Virus record (IMG/VR): IMGVR_UViG_3300009093_000034
Location: 241,834-305,833 of that record
Length of the DNA stretch: 64,000 nt
Direction: 5' to 3' (one strand)
The translations under genes were made by a program, and so were the position numbers. Under the pieces are notes generated by a model. The model was not told the origin of the DNA. It searched no databases and worked only from the letters and a program-made list of their open reading frames with translations. Shown here piece after piece: positions 52,826-63,563 of this stretch (positions are counted from its first letter, which is position 1; the number at the start of each line of letters is the position of its first letter).

Positions 52826-53869
52826 TCAATTAGTCTGAACCACAGGCGTGGGAGGAACAATAAGTTCTCTCACGATCTTCAAAGTTTGTCTTGAGATAGG
52901 AGTTTCTCGGGTCTTCAAATACTCTGTGAAAACATCAGCGATGTTCTCGGCATAGAAATCATCAGACGATAAAGCAAGTTGAGAGTTTCTGACTTTCTTG
53001 ACCATAGAAACAGACCTGATGAAAACCCCAGGATAAGCTTGTTCAGCAATGGACTTGGTCTCAACTCCCAACACAGTCCAAACTGAAACTTTTGCATCTG
53101 TTTCAGGAAGAGGTTTTGGATATTCTACAAAGTAGTAACCGCAAAAGACTGGAAGCTCCAACTCTTCTTTAGAGACTCCAACATCCGTTTTCTTGATCTT
53201 CCAAATTGCTCTAGGAAGAAGAGTCTCGTGTTCGGAGATCTTGCAAGCATAGGCAGATCCGGTGTAGTGATCATTCCATCTTGAGTGGATGTCACCTAAA
53301 CAAACTAGGTTTGTCTTGATTGGGTTCAAGTTGATCTGATGAGCGTAGATCTTATCTGAGGAGTTGTCTGCAAAGTGGCCAAGGACAACGTCATACTCTT
53401 GGTCTAAGATGTTCTGAGGTAAGTTGGAGTAGTAAAGATTCATTGGAGGAAGATCTACTCTGTAGTTATAGTGAGGAAGAGACAAAAACTTCAGGCCAGA
53501 GATGTGAAGAATCTCTGCAGGCTCACGAAGAATGGTGATCCTATCTCCAGACAAGAAGCTAAATGAAAGATGTGGCTTTCCTTTGAAAAGCTTCAGGTCA
53601 TGGTTTCCTACCATGAGAAAACTATGGGTGAACTTGTCCAGAAGAATCTTTCTGAACCTTTCTAATTGATCAAGAACTCCACCTACGTTTGAGGCATCGT
53701 CCATCAAGTCACCAAGACAGATGAAGATTGAATCTGGTTCAACTTCAAACTCAAACTCAAACCAATCTAGGAAAGCATCACCTACAGCCGGTCGCCATTC
53801 TTGGTTAGCTGAAAGGTGAAGATCACCTAAGATATAAACAGATCTGTTTTTATCAATTATTGACGACAA
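52826..53869 (-). CDS. SbcD/Mre11-family (T4 gp47-like) metallophosphoesterase nuclease
   Basis: GDLH, GDLMD, VGNHD, LGHF, LGDIH. Confidence 0.85.
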   Translation of the reverse strand: MSSIIDKNRSVYILGDLHLSANQEWRPAVGDAFLDWFEFEFEVEPDSIFICLGDLMDDASNVGGVLDQLERFRKILLDKFTHSFLMVGNHDLKLFKGKPHLSFSFLSGDRITILREPAEILHISGLKFLSLPHYNYRVDLPPMNLYYSNLPQNILDQEYDVVLGHFADNSSDKIYAHQINLNPIKTNLVCLGDIHSRWNDHYTGSAYACKISEHETLLPRAIWKIKKTDVGVSKEELELPVFCGYYFVEYPKPLPETDAKVSVWTVLGVETKSIAEQAYPGVFIRSVSMVKKVRNSQLALSSDDFYAENIADVFTEYLKTRETPISRQTLKIVRELIVPPTPVVQTN

Positions 53870-54278
53870 TTAAGGTTTCCAACTTGTTTGACACATTTTC
53901 TTCGAGCTCTTTCCTGTTCTTCACGTTCATGAGAGCTCGCCATTGTTCAGGACCGCAGATCCTTTCCCACCAAGCCAAGTTTTGTTCCATCGTCATGATC
54001 TTTCCTGTGATTGGATCTTTCATATTGTCGATACACTCATGGGCATATCTATCCAAGAGAACAACATTTGAGATCTCATAGCACATCTCTGGATGTGCAC
54101 CCACAGGAAAGATATGAGCGACGTCTAATCTTTGAAGCTGAGAGGGGGTTGCGTTTTTCTGTAAGATAAGAGCTTCTTTCATAGAAAGAACTCGCATGAT
54201 GCGATCTTTGCCAAGGTCCCTTTTTCGAACCTTGGCTTTTAGCTCTTGCCACTTGAGATCAGAAGAATCTCTTCTCAA
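53853..54278 (-). CDS. HNH-type endonuclease
   Basis: LDVAHIFPVGAHPEMCYEISNVVLLDRYAH. Confidence 0.7.
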   Translation of the reverse strand: MRRDSSDLKWQELKAKVRKRDLGKDRIMRVLSMKEALILQKNATPSQLQRLDVAHIFPVGAHPEMCYEISNVVLLDRYAHECIDNMKDPITGKIMTMEQNLAWWERICGPEQWRALMNVKNRKELEENVSNKLETLIVVNN

Positions 54279-55225: not shown

Positions 55226-56326
55226 TTACTCTCCTTCTAATTCATTTTCTCCGAAGTTAAATGCTTCGGAGTATCTTTGATGCAAACTTGATCTAATTGT
55301 GTCTAACCATTTTCGTTTTCTAAAGGACTCAACGGTCTTATTTAACTTTTTGGTTATGTCGCCAACATCCTTAATATACATGGTTTTAACTACGTGGGTT
55401 TTAGGATCAATACCTTGATATTGAATCTTTGGGATCTCAAGAATTGAGAAAGAAAATCCTAATTCTTCTTTTAGTTTTTTGACTACTTTCATCCCAGCGA
55501 TGTCTCTATCTGGAATTAGAATGATTTGAGAAAATCTTTTTAGCAGATGAATCTGCCTACGAGAAATTGATGCGCCAAAGATGGCTGTGCTGTTCTTGAA
55601 AAAAGGATCTGTTCTAAGGATCGCTAGGTCCATTAATCCTTCAACAACATAAAGGGGTTTTGTTGGATCTAAGTTCTCAAGATCATAAAGAGAAGAAACT
55701 GTTGTGCCAACAGGATATAGAACCTTTTTATCTTGATCACCAACTACGTCTCGACCTTCAATCGAGATTAGTTTATCGCCTTCGTAGATGGGTATGACCA
55801 ATCTGTTAGTAAAATGAGTGTAGTAATCTAGTTCTTTAGAACCCTTGATCTTGATATTAGATGCCCAACCCATTTGCATGGCATGTGCCACTTCAAACGG
55901 GATGCCTCTAGATCGTAGGTACTTAACAGCTAAGGGACTACTTGAAAATGGTTCAATCGAGCCTTCTTTCATCTCAATTTGAACATCTTTATCCAGGATA
56001 TCTAAGTTTTCTTGTTCGTAATTAGAATGATACTCCATCGCTTGTTGATGGAACTCATCGTTCGAAAGGCCGAGATCTTGGTAAAGAGATCTCTCTGTGA
56101 GATCCCAATACATACCTGCAATTGTTCCAGATTTACTGCAACCAAAACAGTGATAAATGCCGAGATCTACGTTGACTGCACAAGAAGCAGTCTTCTCATC
56201 ATGAAATGGGCATCGAATAAAGATGCGATGGTGCCAAGAACGTTCTGGCGTGGCACAATGTAAGTGTAATCTATGAACGGCTTCAGATACCAAAACTTTT
56301 GGATCTATCGTGTGTTGGAGAGGCAT
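55226..56326 (-). CDS. dnaG: DNA primase (CHC2 Zn finger + TOPRIM)
   Basis: RCPFHDEKTASC...YHCFGC; YLRSRGI; IEGRD; YVVEGLMD; IPDRD. Confidence 0.9.
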   Translation of the reverse strand: MPLQHTIDPKVLVSEAVHRLHLHCATPERSWHHRIFIRCPFHDEKTASCAVNVDLGIYHCFGCSKSGTIAGMYWDLTERSLYQDLGLSNDEFHQQAMEYHSNYEQENLDILDKDVQIEMKEGSIEPFSSSPLAVKYLRSRGIPFEVAHAMQMGWASNIKIKGSKELDYYTHFTNRLVIPIYEGDKLISIEGRDVVGDQDKKVLYPVGTTVSSLYDLENLDPTKPLYVVEGLMDLAILRTDPFFKNSTAIFGASISRRQIHLLKRFSQIILIPDRDIAGMKVVKKLKEELGFSFSILEIPKIQYQGIDPKTHVVKTMYIKDVGDITKKLNKTVESFRKRKWLDTIRSSLHQRYSEAFNFGENELEGE

Positions 56327-56400: not shown

Positions 56401-56883
56401 TTATCTTCTAGCGAATGGAAGTGAAGGGCTCGTATTAGTCGATGGTGATTTAACGCTTATGTCTAGAGGGTTGGGAATAGCTTCTAGAGCAGGAATGGTC
56501 GGAACTACTCCAGCCAAGTTCTCTGCAGGGTTAATAGATTCTTTATCTTTTTGTGCTCTAGCCTTAGCTTGAATGTTAAGTTCCTTCTGTCTATTGATGA
56601 TCTGTTCGGACATGGGTCCTAATCGTTCCAATCGAAGCCTTTCTCTATCAAGAAGCCAGAACACACCGTAGCTATTCAAAGCTTCTGAGATTCTAGAGCC
56701 ATATTGAGGTCCGATTGTTTCATTGGTCAACTTCAAGAATTCTTCAAATGAAAGTAGTCTGTAATCTTCGTCCCCGTCTGGTTGAACCTTAACCATCTCT
56801 CTGGTAGGATCACAGGAGAAAGTCAAAAAGTAATAGCTTAGGAGAGATGGGTTCGATAACTGAACCATGGGAGTCTTAGTCAT
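56401..56883 (-). CDS. Hypothetical protein
   Basis: ACTAACT 4 nt before ATG. Confidence 0.65.
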   Translation of the reverse strand: MTKTPMVQLSNPSLLSYYFLTFSCDPTREMVKVQPDGDEDYRLLSFEEFLKLTNETIGPQYGSRISEALNSYGVFWLLDRERLRLERLGPMSEQIINRQKELNIQAKARAQKDKESINPAENLAGVVPTIPALEAIPNPLDISVKSPSTNTSPSLPFARR

Positions 56884-56914
56884 GATCAGTTAGTCTCTAT
56901 CTTCAACCTCTTCT

Positions 56915-57130
56915 CAATTTGGGCTGGCCCTAAGTATTTCTATTCTTATTATGTTAGATTCTTATATATGCTATCTGACTTGCACACTGTTCATAGTAGT
57001 CAATCTAACAAACTATAGACTAAATAGATAAAACATAATTCATTTACGGTGAACAGGTTCTCGAGTATACTCTGTCAATAAGGAGTACGGGGTTGTTAAA
57101 GATTACACCACGAACTGTCAGACGCCAAAT
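56915..57130 (+). ncRNA. Structured RNA, possibly a truncated group I intron core
   Basis: Stems UGUUAGAUU/AAUCUAACA, UGCUAU/AUAGUA, UUCAU/GUGAA, CAG(G)UUC/GAACUG, UACUC/GAGUA, AUUUGG/CCAAAU. The likeness to group IB introns is from memory and unverified; no P7 3' strand or P9 was found. Confidence 0.4.
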
Positions 57131-58049
57131 CAAAGACGCTGCCGAGTTCATCCAGTACAAAAACATCTCTCCAATGGAAGAGATGAGACAAGACGCAAAG
57201 CCTGTGAACTTCGGACTTATGTTCGGGTCCAGTGCCAGAACGTTCGTTAACGCTGTTCTAGAAACCCGTTGGACAGAACAGCAGTGTGACGATTACATAG
57301 AGTCCAACAACCTCTATGACTTAAAAGACCAAATCATCGCTAGGAACCCAAGAGACACCCCTGTGTTTTGGAAGTACTTGACCTGTGCCTCAGACATTCG
57401 AAACAAGTTCTTCAACACCTACAAAGGACTGAAGGAAAGAATCGACCGAGAAAGGGTCTTTGCTTATCAGCACGGATACGTCAGAAGTTGGCATGGCCAG
57501 GTAAGAAGAATCCCAGAGCTCTTCATCATGGACCACACTGATGCAGGTCGACCATCTGGAGACGACAACTCTCTTTACTCTAGGGTCATCGGAAACCTTC
57601 AGAACATTGCTTCTAACACCTCTATTCAGAATTTCGAAGCAAGCATAGTCATGCCTGCCATCATTGAACTTCATATGTGGTTTCATGAGAACAAGATGAA
57701 GAGCTTCATCTGGAACTCTGTTCACGACTCTATTGACCTTTGCATCTATCGACCAGAGTTGGACATCGTGGCAGCTAAGATCAAAGAAGTCTGTACAGAC
57801 TCTAAGATCTACAAGAACCTTGGTCTTTTCAAAGATTGGGGACTTAACATGGATATCGACATGATGGTAGCTGACTTGACAGACCCCAATGAGTACTACA
57901 AGGGTGGAAAGAAGTACAAGTTCAAGGACGATGTCGAGGTTACTCCTTCTACGAAGATCAAGATAGACCCAAAGCTTAGAGAGATGGAAGAAGCTTGGTT
58001 CCCAAAGAAGAAAGTTCCAACCCGTAAAGTACGGTCTCAAAAGTCTTGA
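57093..58049 (+). CDS. polA: Family A DNA polymerase, C-terminal half only (motifs B and C)
   Basis: RQDAKPVNFGLMFG (motif B), HGYVRSWHGQVRRIP, NTSIQ, NSVHDSI (motif C); no motif A or exonuclease domain; TTG start 7 nt after AGGAG. Confidence 0.85.
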   Translation: MLKITPRTVRRQIKDAAEFIQYKNISPMEEMRQDAKPVNFGLMFGSSARTFVNAVLETRWTEQQCDDYIESNNLYDLKDQIIARNPRDTPVFWKYLTCASDIRNKFFNTYKGLKERIDRERVFAYQHGYVRSWHGQVRRIPELFIMDHTDAGRPSGDDNSLYSRVIGNLQNIASNTSIQNFEASIVMPAIIELHMWFHENKMKSFIWNSVHDSIDLCIYRPELDIVAAKIKEVCTDSKIYKNLGLFKDWGLNMDIDMMVADLTDPNEYYKGGKKYKFKDDVEVTPSTKIKIDPKLREMEEAWFPKKKVPTRKVRSQKS

Positions 58050-58061: not shown

Positions 58062-59441
58062 ATGCTTGAAGCCTCATTTCCCAGCTTGCGCTCCTTCGTT
58101 CAGGAGTGCCAGGCGAATACTTCCTCGAACGCTAAGAAAGAGATTCTTACCAGGTACCCTGACCTGAAAGAGATTTTTCAGTACGTTTACAATCCGTACA
58201 TCAAGTTCTACACCACCTCTGACAACGTGAAAAAACAGAGCAAGGCTCTTCAGAGTGAAGGTCCGAACCTCTTTGGAGGGAAGGGATTGCCTCTTGGAAA
58301 TCTCAACGTCCTTCACGGAGCTCCTGCTCCTAAGGACTTCAAGGAAGTCTTGGATCAACTCTCAGCCAGAACCTTGTCTGGTTTTGAAGGAATCAAAGCC
58401 ATCCTCAAGGTTGTCAAGAACAACAAGCTCTATGAGGATCTGATCTACATGATCCTGGACAAGGATCTGAAAGTTCGAATCGATGTCAAGTCGATCAACA
58501 AGGTCTATCCTAAGTTGATCCCGACCTTCAACGTGGCTTTGGCCAACAAGTACAAGGACGTTGAGGATAAGGTTGACTTCGGAGCTGATGAGTGGTTCGC
58601 CTCTCACAAGCTGGACGGTTTCCGTTGCATCACGGTTGTGGATGGAAACGGAAAGGTCACTTGTTACACTAGAACAGGAAATGAGTACAAGACCTTAGGT
58701 CGAGTGATCGAAGAGATCAAGCGTCTTTATCCCACCTTGAGAAACACCGTGTTTGATGGTGAACTCTGCATCGTGGATGAAAAGGGAGCTGAGCACTTCG
58801 ACTGGATGCAAAAAGAGTGGAACAAAGACAACCACACCATTGCCTTCCCAAGGTATAAACTCTTTGACATGTTGACCCTCGACGAGTTCACGACTGAAGA
58901 ATCTACCAGAGATCTTCTTACCCGTCTTGAGGCCTTGAATGACATGCTTCTTCCTTCCAAGATCCTTAACATGCTCGAACAAAAGATAGTTATGAGCAAG
59001 ATTCATCTTGATGATATGGCCAAAGACGCCGATGATAAGGGTTGGGAAGGTTTGATCATCAGAAAGAACGCTCCTTACCTTGGAAAGCGCAGCAACGATC
59101 TTCTCAAGGTCAAGACGTTCGAAGATATTGAAGTTGTAGTTGAAGGTATTGAAACCGGACCCTTCAGGTACGTCAAGAACAAAGCCGAAGCCGAAGAAGA
59201 GATGATGACCTCCATTTACTTCACATTCTTTAGCGAAAAGCTTCAGAAGAGTAACCGTGTGGACGTCGGCTCTGGTTTCTCAATCGAACAGCGTCAAAGG
59301 TTCTTTGCTCACCCTGAGGAGATCATTGGAAAGACCATCACGGTTAAGTACTTTGAAGAAACAATTAACTCAGATACAGGACTTCCTTCTTTGCGTTTTC
59401 CAGTGTTGAAGACCATCTGGGAAAATGGGAGAGATGAATAA
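58062..59441 (+). CDS. ATP-dependent DNA ligase
   Basis: SHKLDGFRC (KxDG), FDGEL, LFDML, WEGLIIR, LLKVK, ITVKYFEE, SLRFP. Confidence 0.93.
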   Translation: MLEASFPSLRSFVQECQANTSSNAKKEILTRYPDLKEIFQYVYNPYIKFYTTSDNVKKQSKALQSEGPNLFGGKGLPLGNLNVLHGAPAPKDFKEVLDQLSARTLSGFEGIKAILKVVKNNKLYEDLIYMILDKDLKVRIDVKSINKVYPKLIPTFNVALANKYKDVEDKVDFGADEWFASHKLDGFRCITVVDGNGKVTCYTRTGNEYKTLGRVIEEIKRLYPTLRNTVFDGELCIVDEKGAEHFDWMQKEWNKDNHTIAFPRYKLFDMLTLDEFTTEESTRDLLTRLEALNDMLLPSKILNMLEQKIVMSKIHLDDMAKDADDKGWEGLIIRKNAPYLGKRSNDLLKVKTFEDIEVVVEGIETGPFRYVKNKAEAEEEMMTSIYFTFFSEKLQKSNRVDVGSGFSIEQRQRFFAHPEEIIGKTITVKYFEETINSDTGLPSLRFPVLKTIWENGRDE

Positions 59442-61054: not shown

Positions 61055-61239
61055 AATTAGACGAAGAAGACAACCCAGAGTGGCCTAACATTCTTCAAGA
61101 AGTTGGAAGATTGGCAAGTCAAGAAGCTAGAAAGAAGGCCTTTGAGAAAGGTCTTTCTGTAGTTTATGCTGAAGGTGGAAAGCTTCTTAGAGAACATGCA
61201 GATGGAACCATTGAGGTTCTAGGAGACACAACAGCATGA
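61045..61239 (+). CDS. Small hypothetical protein
   Basis: ARKKAFEKGLSVVYAEGGKLLREHADG. Confidence 0.55.
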   Translation: MQVELDEEDNPEWPNILQEVGRLASQEARKKAFEKGLSVVYAEGGKLLREHADGTIEVLGDTTA

Positions 61240-62387
61240 AGATCGCCTACGGTTGTAATGGAGAAGGTTTTGGCCATGTCTCTAGATTGACCACACGTCT
61301 TAACCATCTTGAGAACAAACACGAAGTAGGTGTTTTTCTTCCTCACTCTGTCTTAGATTATTTCCACTCTAAGACCTACGGGTTTCATAGAGCGATCCAT
61401 AAAATTCCAGGACTTCACTTTGTTCAAGTCCATGGTCGAATCGACTTCTTCAAGTCCATCATTCTCAATCTTCCCTTTATTCTCACGTTTCCTCTTTCTG
61501 TTTTTCGCTTGTCGAAACACCTGAAGAAAGAGAAGTATCAAGTTGTCATCTCTGACTTTGAACCTCATATGGCTTGGGCAGGTTTTCTTGCTGGTATTCC
61601 TGTGATTCAGCTAAATCATCCTGGAGTCATGAAGAAGATTCAAGATAAAGAACCTGTGGATCTCACAGCTCTCTTGGTTGCTTACCTGATGGAAGGACCT
61701 TGGAACTATCGAGTCATTGTTTCTTTCTTTGATGGAGATGTTGGTCCTCTGATTCGTCCAAGTCTTCTCTTCAAGAGGCACAAGACCAAAGACAAGGGTT
61801 TTCTTGTCTTCAATCTGAAAGAGTCTTACAAGCACAAGGTCATGAAGGTCTTGAAGAAATTTCCTGATCTCAAATGGAAGCTATTTCCTTCTAAGACAGA
61901 AGATTTTGATAAGGCTTTGAGACACTGCACAGCGGTTGTTACCTCGGCTGGTCATCAGATCATCGCCGAAGCTCTCTTTTTGAAGAAACCTGTTTTGGCC
62001 ATTCCTCAAGAAGGTCAAGCAGAACAGGTTCTTAACGCCAACAAGCTTGAAGAATCCGGAAAAGGCATAGTAGGGTCTCTTCAGACCTTAGATCAAGATC
62101 TAAGACATCTCTTGATGAATCTTAAGCATCTCAAAAAGAACAAGCTTCCTAAGTGGTGTATCGTCGAAGATGGAACCATGGATCTTCTTAAGAAGCTTGA
62201 GAAGTTCTTTTCTAAGATCCAGTCTTCTGGAACTCAGGCAAATCTGGGTAATGAGCCTTTATCCAAGCGATGGCATCAGTCTTCTCCTGTTCCGTCAAGT
62301 CCTCGAACGCAGGTAGACGATCCTTCTCTTCTCTCTGGTAGTTCGAACTCTCTTGTATCTGTTCTAACGTCTGTCCCCGGTATGTGA
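61236..62387 (+). CDS. GT-B glycosyltransferase (MJ1255/GT28-like)
   Basis: YGCNGEGFGHVSR, VISDFEP, TSAGHQIIAEAL..KKP..AIP..GQAEQ..NA. Confidence 0.85.
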   Translation: MKIAYGCNGEGFGHVSRLTTRLNHLENKHEVGVFLPHSVLDYFHSKTYGFHRAIHKIPGLHFVQVHGRIDFFKSIILNLPFILTFPLSVFRLSKHLKKEKYQVVISDFEPHMAWAGFLAGIPVIQLNHPGVMKKIQDKEPVDLTALLVAYLMEGPWNYRVIVSFFDGDVGPLIRPSLLFKRHKTKDKGFLVFNLKESYKHKVMKVLKKFPDLKWKLFPSKTEDFDKALRHCTAVVTSAGHQIIAEALFLKKPVLAIPQEGQAEQVLNANKLEESGKGIVGSLQTLDQDLRHLLMNLKHLKKNKLPKWCIVEDGTMDLLKKLEKFFSKIQSSGTQANLGNEPLSKRWHQSSPVPSSPRTQVDDPSLLSGSSNSLVSVLTSVPGM

Positions 62388-62808
62388 TGACGTCCTGACG
62401 AACATTAAGGTTAGCGCACTTGAAGTTCATCAAGTGACCAAGAGCTAAGTGATGGTTCTCTTCTGGTTTTCCAGACTCTGTTTCGCAGAGAGTGATTAAA
62501 TTTGGTGCCCACTCTTCAAGAGAAGGAAAACCAAGGTTGATAGCGTAGTCAAACGGAAACACATGGTGGACTTGAACTGCGTCGGTCTTTCCACAAGCTT
62601 CACAAGCTGGATGGTCTTTCAAAAACTTGTTCTTGAAAGCTCCCCAAGTTGAACTCCTCTTTACATTATGAAGAACAACTCCATGATCTTCAGATTGAGG
62701 TTCCTGAGAAGGAACTGGAGTTTTAACGACAGGCGTTGAAACAGTTGGTTTTGGAGGAGTAGAAACACTTTGTGTTTTTCTTCCTCTTAAAAAATCTAGA
62801 ATACCCAA
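62212..62808 (-). CDS. HNH endonuclease
   Basis: CEACG..DAVQVHHVFPF...NLITLCE...HH; TTG with GGAGG SD. Confidence 0.8.
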   Translation of the reverse strand: MGILDFLRGRKTQSVSTPPKPTVSTPVVKTPVPSQEPQSEDHGVVLHNVKRSSTWGAFKNKFLKDHPACEACGKTDAVQVHHVFPFDYAINLGFPSLEEWAPNLITLCETESGKPEENHHLALGHLMNFKCANLNVRQDVITYRGQTLEQIQESSNYQREEKDRLPAFEDLTEQEKTDAIAWIKAHYPDLPEFQKTGS

Positions 62809-62930: not shown

Positions 62931-63563
62931 ATGAACCCTACGTTTAACTCTCTGTCTAAGTGGACAGATGATCTTTTTTCAGCTATTGATACAGTAGCTA
63001 ATGATTTCAACAACTCTATTGTTGGAAACAACTCTAACAGTGGATATTGGGTAGGAGATTATCCTCCTTCTTTTCCTGTTGATCCGTGGCCCACAAAGTG
63101 GATCTACGAGCCTTACATCAAGTTCTATCCTCAGATCATTGAGGTCATCACGACTGTGGTGAAGGACCAAGGCTCTCCATGGAGAGATTCTCCAAACTTC
63201 CCTCCTGTCAACATTGATCTAAACCCTGTCACGAAGGAACTTCGTTTCACTTGGGCTCTCGCTGGTGTCCGTAAGGACCATGACGTCGAGATTGAGTTTG
63301 ATTCTGATAAGTTGATCCTTCATATTAAGGCCAAGGAAACTGATACTGAAACTAAGGATTCAGAAGAAGTAACCGGAGAGATCAAATGGGCTTCTCTAAA
63401 ACAAGGAATCAAGACCAAGGTCGTTGGAGACTACTCTTACGATGTGGCTGGTTCCAGATATGATGTAGCCAAGGCTGTTGCTAAGTGGGATGATGGTCTC
63501 TTGACTGTTACTCTTCCTCTTAGAGAAGAGGCTAAGCCCTTCAAGGTTCAGATCCAGAGTTAA
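62931..63563 (+). CDS. Small heat-shock protein (Hsp20/alpha-crystallin)
   Basis: PPVNI, FTWALAGV, AKWDDGLLTVTLP; SD AGGAGG. Confidence 0.85.
   Translation: MNPTFNSLSKWTDDLFSAIDTVANDFNNSIVGNNSNSGYWVGDYPPSFPVDPWPTKWIYEPYIKFYPQIIEVITTVVKDQGSPWRDSPNFPPVNIDLNPVTKELRFTWALAGVRKDHDVEIEFDSDKLILHIKAKETDTETKDSEEVTGEIKWASLKQGIKTKVVGDYSYDVAGSRYDVAKAVAKWDDGLLTVTLPLREEAKPFKVQIQS

Follow-up and report, generated by a model that had tools for sequence, protein, structure and literature searches.

The window analysed here is a stretch of 64,000 nucleotides (nt), the last 64 kb of a 305,833-bp phage record of IMG/VR (genome positions 241834-305833), and contains the gene for the C-terminal part of a family A DNA polymerase (PolA), here named the C piece; the N-terminal part, here named the N piece, is encoded by another gene far away in the same genome. 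Our reading, to which a probability of about 70% is given, is that the only polymerase of this phage consists of two separate chains, and that the cut between them lies in a non-catalytic relic of a phage split intein of the type of NrdJ-1 and gp41-1. A sequence of 123 bp is repeated exactly at both ends of the record, and therefore the assembly was regarded as closed and the 305.8-kb phage genome as complete. Sequence related to this phage is contained in soil and rhizosphere metagenomes. The main features of both genes are listed below; positions are those of the window unless they are preceded by the word genome.

57093-58049, plus strand: C piece of PolA, 318 amino acids, TTG start (Pfam PF00476, profile positions 192-358 only)
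57080-57085, plus strand: ribosome-binding site AAGGAG, 7 nt before the TTG, as read from the sequence
57093-57131, plus strand: residues 1-13 of the C piece, MLKITPRTVRRQI, a start conserved in four split clades
57186-57227, plus strand: motif B RQDAKPVNFGLMFG, C-piece residues 32-45, in columns that are invariant or near-invariant in the C-piece alignment
57717-57740, plus strand: motif C SVHDSIDL with the catalytic Asp, C-piece residues 209-216 (translation and alignment)
57921-58046, plus strand: lysine-rich C-terminal extension of 42 residues (277-318), from the alignment
Genome 90522-92603, minus strand: N piece of PolA, an open reading frame (ORF) of 693 amino acids (DNA_pol_A positions 3-197)

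The C piece contains the second half of the fingers and the palm, with motifs B and C, and neither motif A nor an exonuclease domain is present in its 318 amino acids, as the initial annotation of this region had described. The same annotation had reported a well-spaced ribosome-binding site before the TTG, a divergent neighbour (56401-56883) and nothing polymerase-like upstream on the strand of the C piece, and these observations were all reproduced. Thirty-five columns, motifs B and C included, are invariant across 16 aligned C pieces, and residues H211, D212, S213, I214 and D215 are invariant in the C-piece alignment; the sequence data support purifying selection acting on this ORF, rather than a pseudogene. 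Motif B is of the R-x-x-x-K-x-x-x-F-x-x-x-Y-G type, with F replacing Y in the clade, and motif C shows H-D-S in place of the usual H-D-E throughout the clade. Most homologues are devoid of the lysine-rich tail, which is common only to the closest relative, P0002.

The N-terminal half had been expected elsewhere in the genome, and there it was found. The N piece includes a conserved N-terminal region, a 3'-5' exonuclease domain (PF01612 in Pfam, residues 208-373), the thumb, motif A and the first half of the fingers. The exonuclease motifs D-x-E, N-x(3)-F-D and Y-x(3)-D were read by eye in the translation, as was motif A, V-D-Y-A-S-L-Q-A-R, which is of the D-Y-S-Q-I-E-L-R type. The usual Glu of motif A is Gln throughout the clade, at a position that we take to be the sugar-discriminating steric gate in Klenow; together with the H-D-S of motif C and the Phe of motif B, this Gln could alter nucleotide selectivity. 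Relatives conserve the region of ~190 residues ahead of the exonuclease (N-piece residues 1-195, genome ~92019-92603, minus strand), for which Pfam gave no match, and the model of the contiguous relative P0053 shows it confidently folded. Outside the window, at genome 92604-92846 (L016:4604-4846), the N-piece gene is divergent from a GroEL-type chaperonin gene (Cpn60_TCP1, E 2e-66), and a 224-aa (amino acid) ORF with no Pfam match is situated beyond the 3' end of the N piece.

The polymerase motifs are thus not on one polypeptide, being encoded by two genes on opposite strands, at a distance of 206 kb along the record and of ~96 kb in the shorter direction. The two products are complementary: the PHROG 17 profile is covered from 606 to 1050 by the N piece and from 1051 to 1238 by the C piece, with zero gap and zero overlap. 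A search of the whole genome with PF00476 detected only these two places, and neither a family B polymerase nor Pol III alpha was found when both were searched in the complete genome, so that the complete polymerase elsewhere for which the initial annotation had allowed did not appear. The split PolA is the sole DNA polymerase detectable in the complete genome.

When aligned with the contiguous relatives P0040, P0051, P0053 and P0207, the N piece and the C piece follow each other in this order, and these relatives show an uninterrupted insert of 55-60 residues that other relatives lack. This insert is located in the fingers, after the D-x-H-S-x-T-A motif and ahead of the helix that precedes motif B, and it is inside this ~60-residue beta insert that all N pieces end and all C pieces start. 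The N pieces end with A-x-D-L-x-x-E/D-D-x-L plus 0-6 residues, and the start of the C pieces, M-L/I-K-I-x-K/R-x-T, is conserved in four separate split clades. In the AlphaFold model of P0053 (pLDDT 91.3) the insert is built of seven strands between residues 655 and 708, and the break corresponds to the beta-turn between strands 690-693 and 696-699; consequently, five strands would come from the N piece and the last two from the first 10-13 residues of the C piece. C-piece residues 1-13 correspond approximately to P0053 residues 698-710 (strands 696-699 and 703-708).

Structural comparisons related this insert to inteins. Folded alone (P0207 residues 655-722), it gave a pLDDT of 90.9, and when the model was compared with the PDB by Foldseek the top 50 matches were almost only inteins, with probabilities mostly of 0.9-1.0 and E values of 0.065-1.3; these matches included gp41-1, TFIIB, DnaB, RecA, NrdJ-1, RadA, hedgehog and Npu DnaE. 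A search without Foldseek against 48,161 representative chains placed inteins or Hint domains at all ranks from 1 to 24 (Z 7.4-3.7), and the first unrelated fold appeared at rank 25 (Z 3.6). A second look gave structural Z scores of up to 8.2, with only the central half of the Hint fold present. The aligned ranges correspond to the centre of the inteins and span the split site (gp41-1 40-104, NrdJ-1 54-128, Npu DnaE 47-115).

Sequence comparisons placed the cut in the same register. A hidden Markov model of the insert, compared with 177,635 PDB sequences, had the NrdJ-1 split intein as its best match (E 0.0062), with NrdJ-1 chain residues 80-105 (from T-P-D-H of block B to D-E-L-T-D-D-D-E-L-V) aligned with the end of the N piece. 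The published numbering of NrdJ-1, with N145 and Asn40 (bioRxiv 10.64898/2026.03.03.709324), implies an N half of 105 residues and a C half of 40 residues. The T-H-N-F histidine served to derive a chain offset of ~+3, which puts the end of the N half at about chain residue 108, and hence the N piece would end within ~3 residues of the natural split site of NrdJ-1. The insert was also aligned by hhalign with the motif-B intein of the relative P0215 (residues 671-814; P 0.0075) in the same register, pairing T-P-D-H with L-G-L-E and K-I-K-K-I-T-R-V with K-I-I-D-I-Q-R-V. Pfam found no Hint family in the insert alone, and a 24-position profile of the C-piece head gave chance matches only against the PDB, being too short. 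No further copies of such a paired element, here named a clasp, were found in the 305.8-kb genome. The break was most probably made at the level of a protein element, at the canonical split site of a degenerate intein.

The features needed for protein splicing are missing from the relic. It has ~60 residues (~47 + 13), compared with ~130-145 in a working mini-intein, and aligns from about intein residue 40-54 on, the first ~45-50 residues, including block A, being absent. The tail of the N piece has no Cys and no conserved nucleophile at the junction, and the block B His is replaced, with T-P-D-H of NrdJ-1 opposite x-G-G-E in the relic profile. On the C-terminal side there are ~13 residues from the start of the C piece to the resumed polymerase sequence, and blocks F and G, the terminal Asn or Gln and the +1 Cys, Ser or Thr are absent from the relic, in which no H-N or Q followed by C, S or T occurs; the head of the window C piece reads K-D-A where many homologues carry T or S. 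The absence of splicing residues suggests that the chains assemble non-covalently. A complex prediction with the N and C pieces gave an ipSAE of 0.86, and the best of three controls scored 0.00; in the calibration of this score 51 of 78 solved complexes and 2 of 108 mismatched pairs attained the mark. In this model, C-piece residues 1-13 are in contact with N-piece residues 627-659 and 682-690. We infer that these 13 residues are a relic of the first strand of the intein C half and complete the clasp, and the insert probably serves today to clasp both chains together. The proposal of the initial annotation that PolA is made of two chains with a composite active site is supported, but its explanation of the break by a decayed intron is not: an intein that later decayed is the cause favoured here.

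The polymerase family is rich in inteins, and what look like genuine inteins were found in motif B of relatives. P0215 carries a contiguous motif-B intein (Pfam Intein_splicing, E 3e-5) that starts with C-F-I-E-G, includes T-P-D-H and ends with G-Q before C, and the apparent motif-B inteins of relatives sit between R-x-x-A-K and N-F-G. In several C fragments (e.g., P0104 and P0133) the N-terminus is an intein-C-like segment with a final Q, and C-N-F-G comes next; from their sequences these fragments are read as carrying split inteins in motif B. Apparent motif-B inteins or split inteins are also present in P0109, P0122, P0153, P0158, P0063, P0098 and P0071. In P0087 and P0072 the fingers break is combined with a motif-B intein.

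The same tail and head were detected at no fewer than three break points in the polymerase family, namely in the exonuclease domain, before motif A and in the fingers. P0219 (L026:156-1328) is an N fragment broken in the exonuclease domain with the same relic tail (domain E 2e-6); P0108 and P0111 are C fragments cut before motif A or before P-N-x-Q-Q-x-P, with heads of the MIKI or MNIKK type; and P0054 is a C piece carrying a second relic tail at its own C-terminus, so some phages may build PolA from three chains. An ORF with DUF7487 is located directly after the P0219 fragment (L026:1318-2988), and another, with DUF7487, a TnsA-like PD-(D/E)xK domain and NUMOD3, overlaps the start of the C piece in L007 (L007:9160-10020); both are putative free-standing homing endonucleases. 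We put forward tentatively, at somewhat less than even odds, that phages have a class of minimal non-splicing split-Hint clasps (~47 + 13 residues), derived from split inteins or acting as mobile modules, that breaks essential genes at several sites and holds the pieces together non-covalently, with the polymerase pieces of this phage also tied to each other by a three-copy control element that is shared with a helicase gene.

Homologues of both pieces are numerous. A word-indexed search with the C piece detected 30 further homologues of 200-360 aa (most of 266-311), and an exhaustive search found 73 stand-alone matches and 65 contiguous enzymes of 710-1230 aa (most of 820-990). About 30 homologues of the N piece, with 666-731 aa, cover 93-100% of it and share the same end point. 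An N piece (P0194) and a C piece (P0004) are each listed from ENA with a contig of 292,485 bp, and from this common length they are presumed to belong to one contig. The DNA pairs available for comparison are either 99% identical or, at the protein level, only ~52-59% identical, the latter being judged too diverged for dN/dS. When both pieces were compared by tblastn with 13 loci (L001-L013), an adjacent partner gene was found in none; a 271-aa gene after the N piece in L012 was considered as a C piece and rejected by tblastn. Among isolated phages no close relative was found, the best matches being contiguous PolAs at ~25% identity, and single-protein searches of viral contigs returned one near-identical contig only. 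In a tree of 139 C regions, the window belongs to a clade of 23 rows, all of them split, that has 98% support; elsewhere on the tree split and contiguous forms interleave, forcing at least seven changes.

Gene order indicated that one locus has hosted the different forms of the polymerase. A gene for a DnaG-type primase lies upstream of the C piece, separated from it by a small divergent ORF, and it marks the ancestral polymerase locus. In L014 a contiguous PolA gene (P0040) is divergent from the primase and small-ORF block, in L011-L013 the N piece is in this place, and in the window and L018 it is the C piece. The presence of the contiguous gene or of either piece at a single primase-adjacent locus supports the genomic uncoupling of the halves. 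L018, a relative at 59% identity, has the same order of primase, small ORF, C piece and ligase, and a 125-160-aa ORF occupies the position of the window 160-aa ORF in L012, L013, L014 and L018. The C piece of L022 and L023 immediately precedes an SNF2 helicase gene of the same orientation; L006 and L007 have a single small ORF, on the opposite strand, between these two genes.

A DNA element of ~120-140 nt precedes the C piece; the genome contains exactly three copies of it, each oriented as its downstream gene. Its copies and the signals near the C piece are as follows:

56903-57023, plus strand: element copy 1, upstream of the C piece (blastn, nhmmer and alignments, as for copies 2 and 3)
Genome 92811-92671, minus strand: element copy 2, upstream of the N-piece gene
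Genome 178701-178843, plus strand: element copy 3, upstream of the gene for a 643-aa SNF2-type helicase
56942-56972, plus strand: exact 31-mer, found by sequence comparison also at genome 92726-92756 (minus strand) upstream of the N piece
56959-56968, plus strand: core motif TTCTTATATA, 134 nt before the TTG
57043-57071, plus strand: weak sigma-70-like site, TTTACG, 17 nt, TATACT, a candidate only

The core TTCTTATATA occurs three times in the 305.8-kb genome (1.3 expected), all within copies of the element, and its distance to the start codon is 134 nt for the C piece, 136 nt for the N piece and 113 nt for the helicase. The 9-mer TCTTATATA was found 94-128 nt upstream of the C piece in L018, of the N piece in L020 and L021, of the N-piece operon in L013 and of the SNF2 helicase in L006 and L007; the relatives that share it have ~40-72% protein identity. 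From its position and conservation, the element could be a shared promoter or operator that keeps both halves and the helicase in step. A role as a general promoter was rejected, with the core present only three times in 306 kb, and sigma-70-like sites near the C piece are no more numerous than in shuffled sequences. In the window element A-G-A-T-T-C-T-T-A-T is found twice, 17 nt apart, and five copies of T-A/T-TTATATA with 16-19-nt spacing, iteron-like, occur at L014:6858-6934, upstream of the P0040 gene. A small ORF ends at the start of the third copy of the element, overlapping it by ~16 nt; it belongs to a group with HNH-like patterns mentioned below.

The likely history behind these observations begins with the invasion of the polymerase gene by an intein, continues with the fracture of the gene at the intein split site, probably by a free-standing endonuclease gene, and the separation of the halves in the genome, and ends with the loss of splicing and the trimming of the intein to a docking core. 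The two relic halves would still dock like the halves of a split intein, and, with the large native interface of palm and fingers, they would hold both chains in one active site with no peptide bond; both genes and the SNF2-type helicase gene would be co-regulated through the three-copy element. Several points weigh against this interpretation. Each similarity to inteins is modest (Z up to 8.2, E 0.006, P 0.0075), the relic spans only about half of the Hint fold, and the mapping of the break to the split site relies on alignment ranges and a derived offset. The association of the chains and the activity of the enzyme are predicted, and the complex predictor may be recalling the fold of single-chain PolA. 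The changes in the tree, at least seven, would be compatible with splitting first or decay first and with one split or several, and the promoter or operator role of the upstream element is deduced only from its position and conservation.

Among the alternatives, the one to be taken most seriously, although we consider it unlikely, is that the beta insert is an ordinary lineage-specific insertion in the fingers, Hint-like by convergence, and that the gene underwent a plain fission, with a stop and a new start in a tolerant loop and no intein involved. The structural Z scores are in the range that the tool calls common, Pfam does not recognize a Hint family in the insert, and such a plain fission, caused by the deletion of 1 nt, has been described between the exonuclease and the polymerase of T7-like PolAs (PMC10201439). 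Convergence is opposed, however, by the exclusive presence of inteins and Hint domains among the 24 best structural matches, by an independent sequence profile that puts a split intein first in the same register, with which the hhalign comparison against the family's own intein agrees, by the recurrence of the tail and head motifs at other break sites of the polymerase family, and by the motif-B inteins and split inteins of relatives. It is highly improbable that the chains are instead joined covalently by protein trans-splicing, with the element as an active split intein: the fold of the insert is intein-like and relatives have apparent split inteins in motif B (P0104, P0133), but with ~60 residues the element lacks block A and its nucleophile, blocks F and G, the terminal Asn or Gln and the +1 residue, and the changes from TPDH to xGGE and to K-D-A at the head of the window C piece, against T or S in many homologues, point the same way.

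The explanation favoured by the initial annotation was a group I intron that decayed at the break, or trans-spliced messenger RNAs, with the C piece restarting from a ribosome-binding site within the remnant. Group I introns occur in PolA genes of SPO1-like and T7-like phages, which gives this idea some precedent, and one group I intron in a phage PolA is cited in PMC2677866. The best Rfam match to a group I intron (RF00028, Intron_gpI) was faint, however, with 12.2 bits and E 3.7, on the minus strand and far under the gathering score of 50 bits. The energies of RNA folding upstream of the C piece equalled those of shuffled sequences in four tests (z-scores -0.17, -0.21, -1.88 and 0.06, i.e., from -1.9 to +0.1), which does not agree with a ribosome-binding site embedded in a structured or intron-like RNA; the element noticed at ~56915 is real, but it is copy 1 of the three-copy DNA element, found also at an unrelated helicase gene, and not a structured RNA. 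The first ~10 codons, attributed before to the RNA element, encode a protein N-terminus (M-L-K-I-x-K/R-x-T...) conserved in more than 70 stand-alone homologues. Intron sequence was likewise missing at the flank of the N piece, where Rfam found nothing and the next gene begins 11 nt after the stop, and with Rfam and folding negative at both loci RNA trans-splicing found no support. We regard an intron origin as having very little chance of being correct. The least probable of all is that the ORF is a dead remnant or the junction at ~56940-56970 an assembly chimera. Misassembly, a concern of the initial annotation, was checked on assembler contigs only: the break that the Logan contigs of run X1 show at 56942-56972, together with their alternative flanks, is explained by the exact 31-mer repeat there. 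The IMG/VR contig L004, which comes from another metagenome, has 100% identity over 56800-57200, L018 has the same gene order at 59% identity, the catalytic motifs are invariant and no other DNA polymerase was detected in the genome.

The genes around the C piece in the window include those of the primase locus and the ligase:

55226-56326, minus strand: DnaG-type primase gene, 366 aa (Pfam Zn_ribbon_DnaG and Toprim)
56401-56883, minus strand: 160-aa ORF, divergent from the C piece, without Pfam or PHROG match
58062-59441, plus strand: ATP-dependent DNA ligase gene, the next downstream of the C piece (Pfam DNA_ligase_A_M and OB_2)

A glycosyltransferase gene (Glyco_trans_1_3, E 5e-34) was found at window 61236-62387 (plus strand), followed by an Hsp20/alpha-crystallin gene at window 62931-63563 (plus strand); genes like these two come after the polymerase locus in the relative L012. 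No transfer RNA genes were detected in the 64-kb window. Small ORFs at window 53853-54278 and 62212-62808 (both minus strand) and at L017:1588-2217 showed Cys/His patterns that resemble HNH endonucleases by eye, and none of the three reached a Pfam match.

The division of PolA between motifs A and B is shared by a wide clade of large phages of soil and rhizosphere, indicating that a break within the catalytic domain is tolerated in polymerases of family A. Searches of the searchable literature revealed neither a PolA divided at this place nor a natural intein relic without splicing at the site of a gene break; if our reading is true, this would be the first natural case in that literature of a split intein that lost splicing and was kept as a docking module. 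A self-assembling pair of 60 residues could be of practical interest as a small non-covalent tag for protein complementation, and the three-copy element offers a testable handle on how the phage balances the expression of the separated halves. Annotation pipelines label both genes "DNA polymerase I-like", and the incompleteness of each is missed.

Polymerases encoded in two genes are known from other phages. Split Pol III is known in jumbo phages, and the replicative polymerase of PhiKZ, also a jumbo phage, is described in the abstract of its report as two gene products, DNAP-N and DNAP-C, in a stable 1:1 complex (bioRxiv 10.64898/2026.09.30.755723); it belongs to family B, unlike the family A enzyme described here, and that abstract mentions no intein-derived junction element. 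Two-gene family A polymerases with a predicted reassembly have been described in S-SBP1-like T7-like cyanophages (Czernecki et al. 2023, PMC10201439) and as "DNA polymerase part I / part II" in LUZ24-like phages (PMC3890496). Their breaks lie between the exonuclease and polymerase domains and their genes are adjacent or close, whereas here the break goes through the polymerase domain.

Parallels are also found among essential enzymes broken by mobile elements. Aeh1 NrdA (mobE) and the split gp43 of T4-like phages (both summarised in PMC2677866) are, like this polymerase, essential enzymes with a composite active site formed by two chains after invasion by a mobile element, although no intein is involved there and the halves are adjacent with an endonuclease gene between them. 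Cyanobacterial DnaE and Nanoarchaeum PolB (summarised in PMC2677866) are replicative polymerases made from two distant genes with an intein half each; their inteins are active and ligate the halves, while the evidence presented here points to non-covalent assembly.

The arrangement is most similar to that of the fractured genes with naturally split inteins known from phage metagenomes, such as NrdJ-1 and gp41-1 (PMC2677866), in which the gene of an enzyme of DNA synthesis is also broken at an intein split site; the insert has NrdJ-1 as its best sequence match and its fold matches both. A difference is that the halves described here are reduced to ~47 + 13 residues, in which every splicing block is gone and no peptide bond is possible. 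Putative free-standing endonuclease ORFs lie beside the pieces as in fractured genes, here in the relatives L007 and L026, which could be regarded as partial versions of that arrangement; in the present genome the two halves are widely separated, and neither is flanked by an endonuclease ORF. Unlike the fractured genes of Dassa et al., the host gene is a family A polymerase cut in the fingers, and the relic is also found uninterrupted in contiguous relatives. The fractured-gene model proceeds from invasion to fracture, endonuclease loss and genomic uncoupling as step IV (Dassa et al. 2009, PMC2677866), and a non-splicing relic would add one step to it, the loss of splicing with the trimming of the intein to a docking core.

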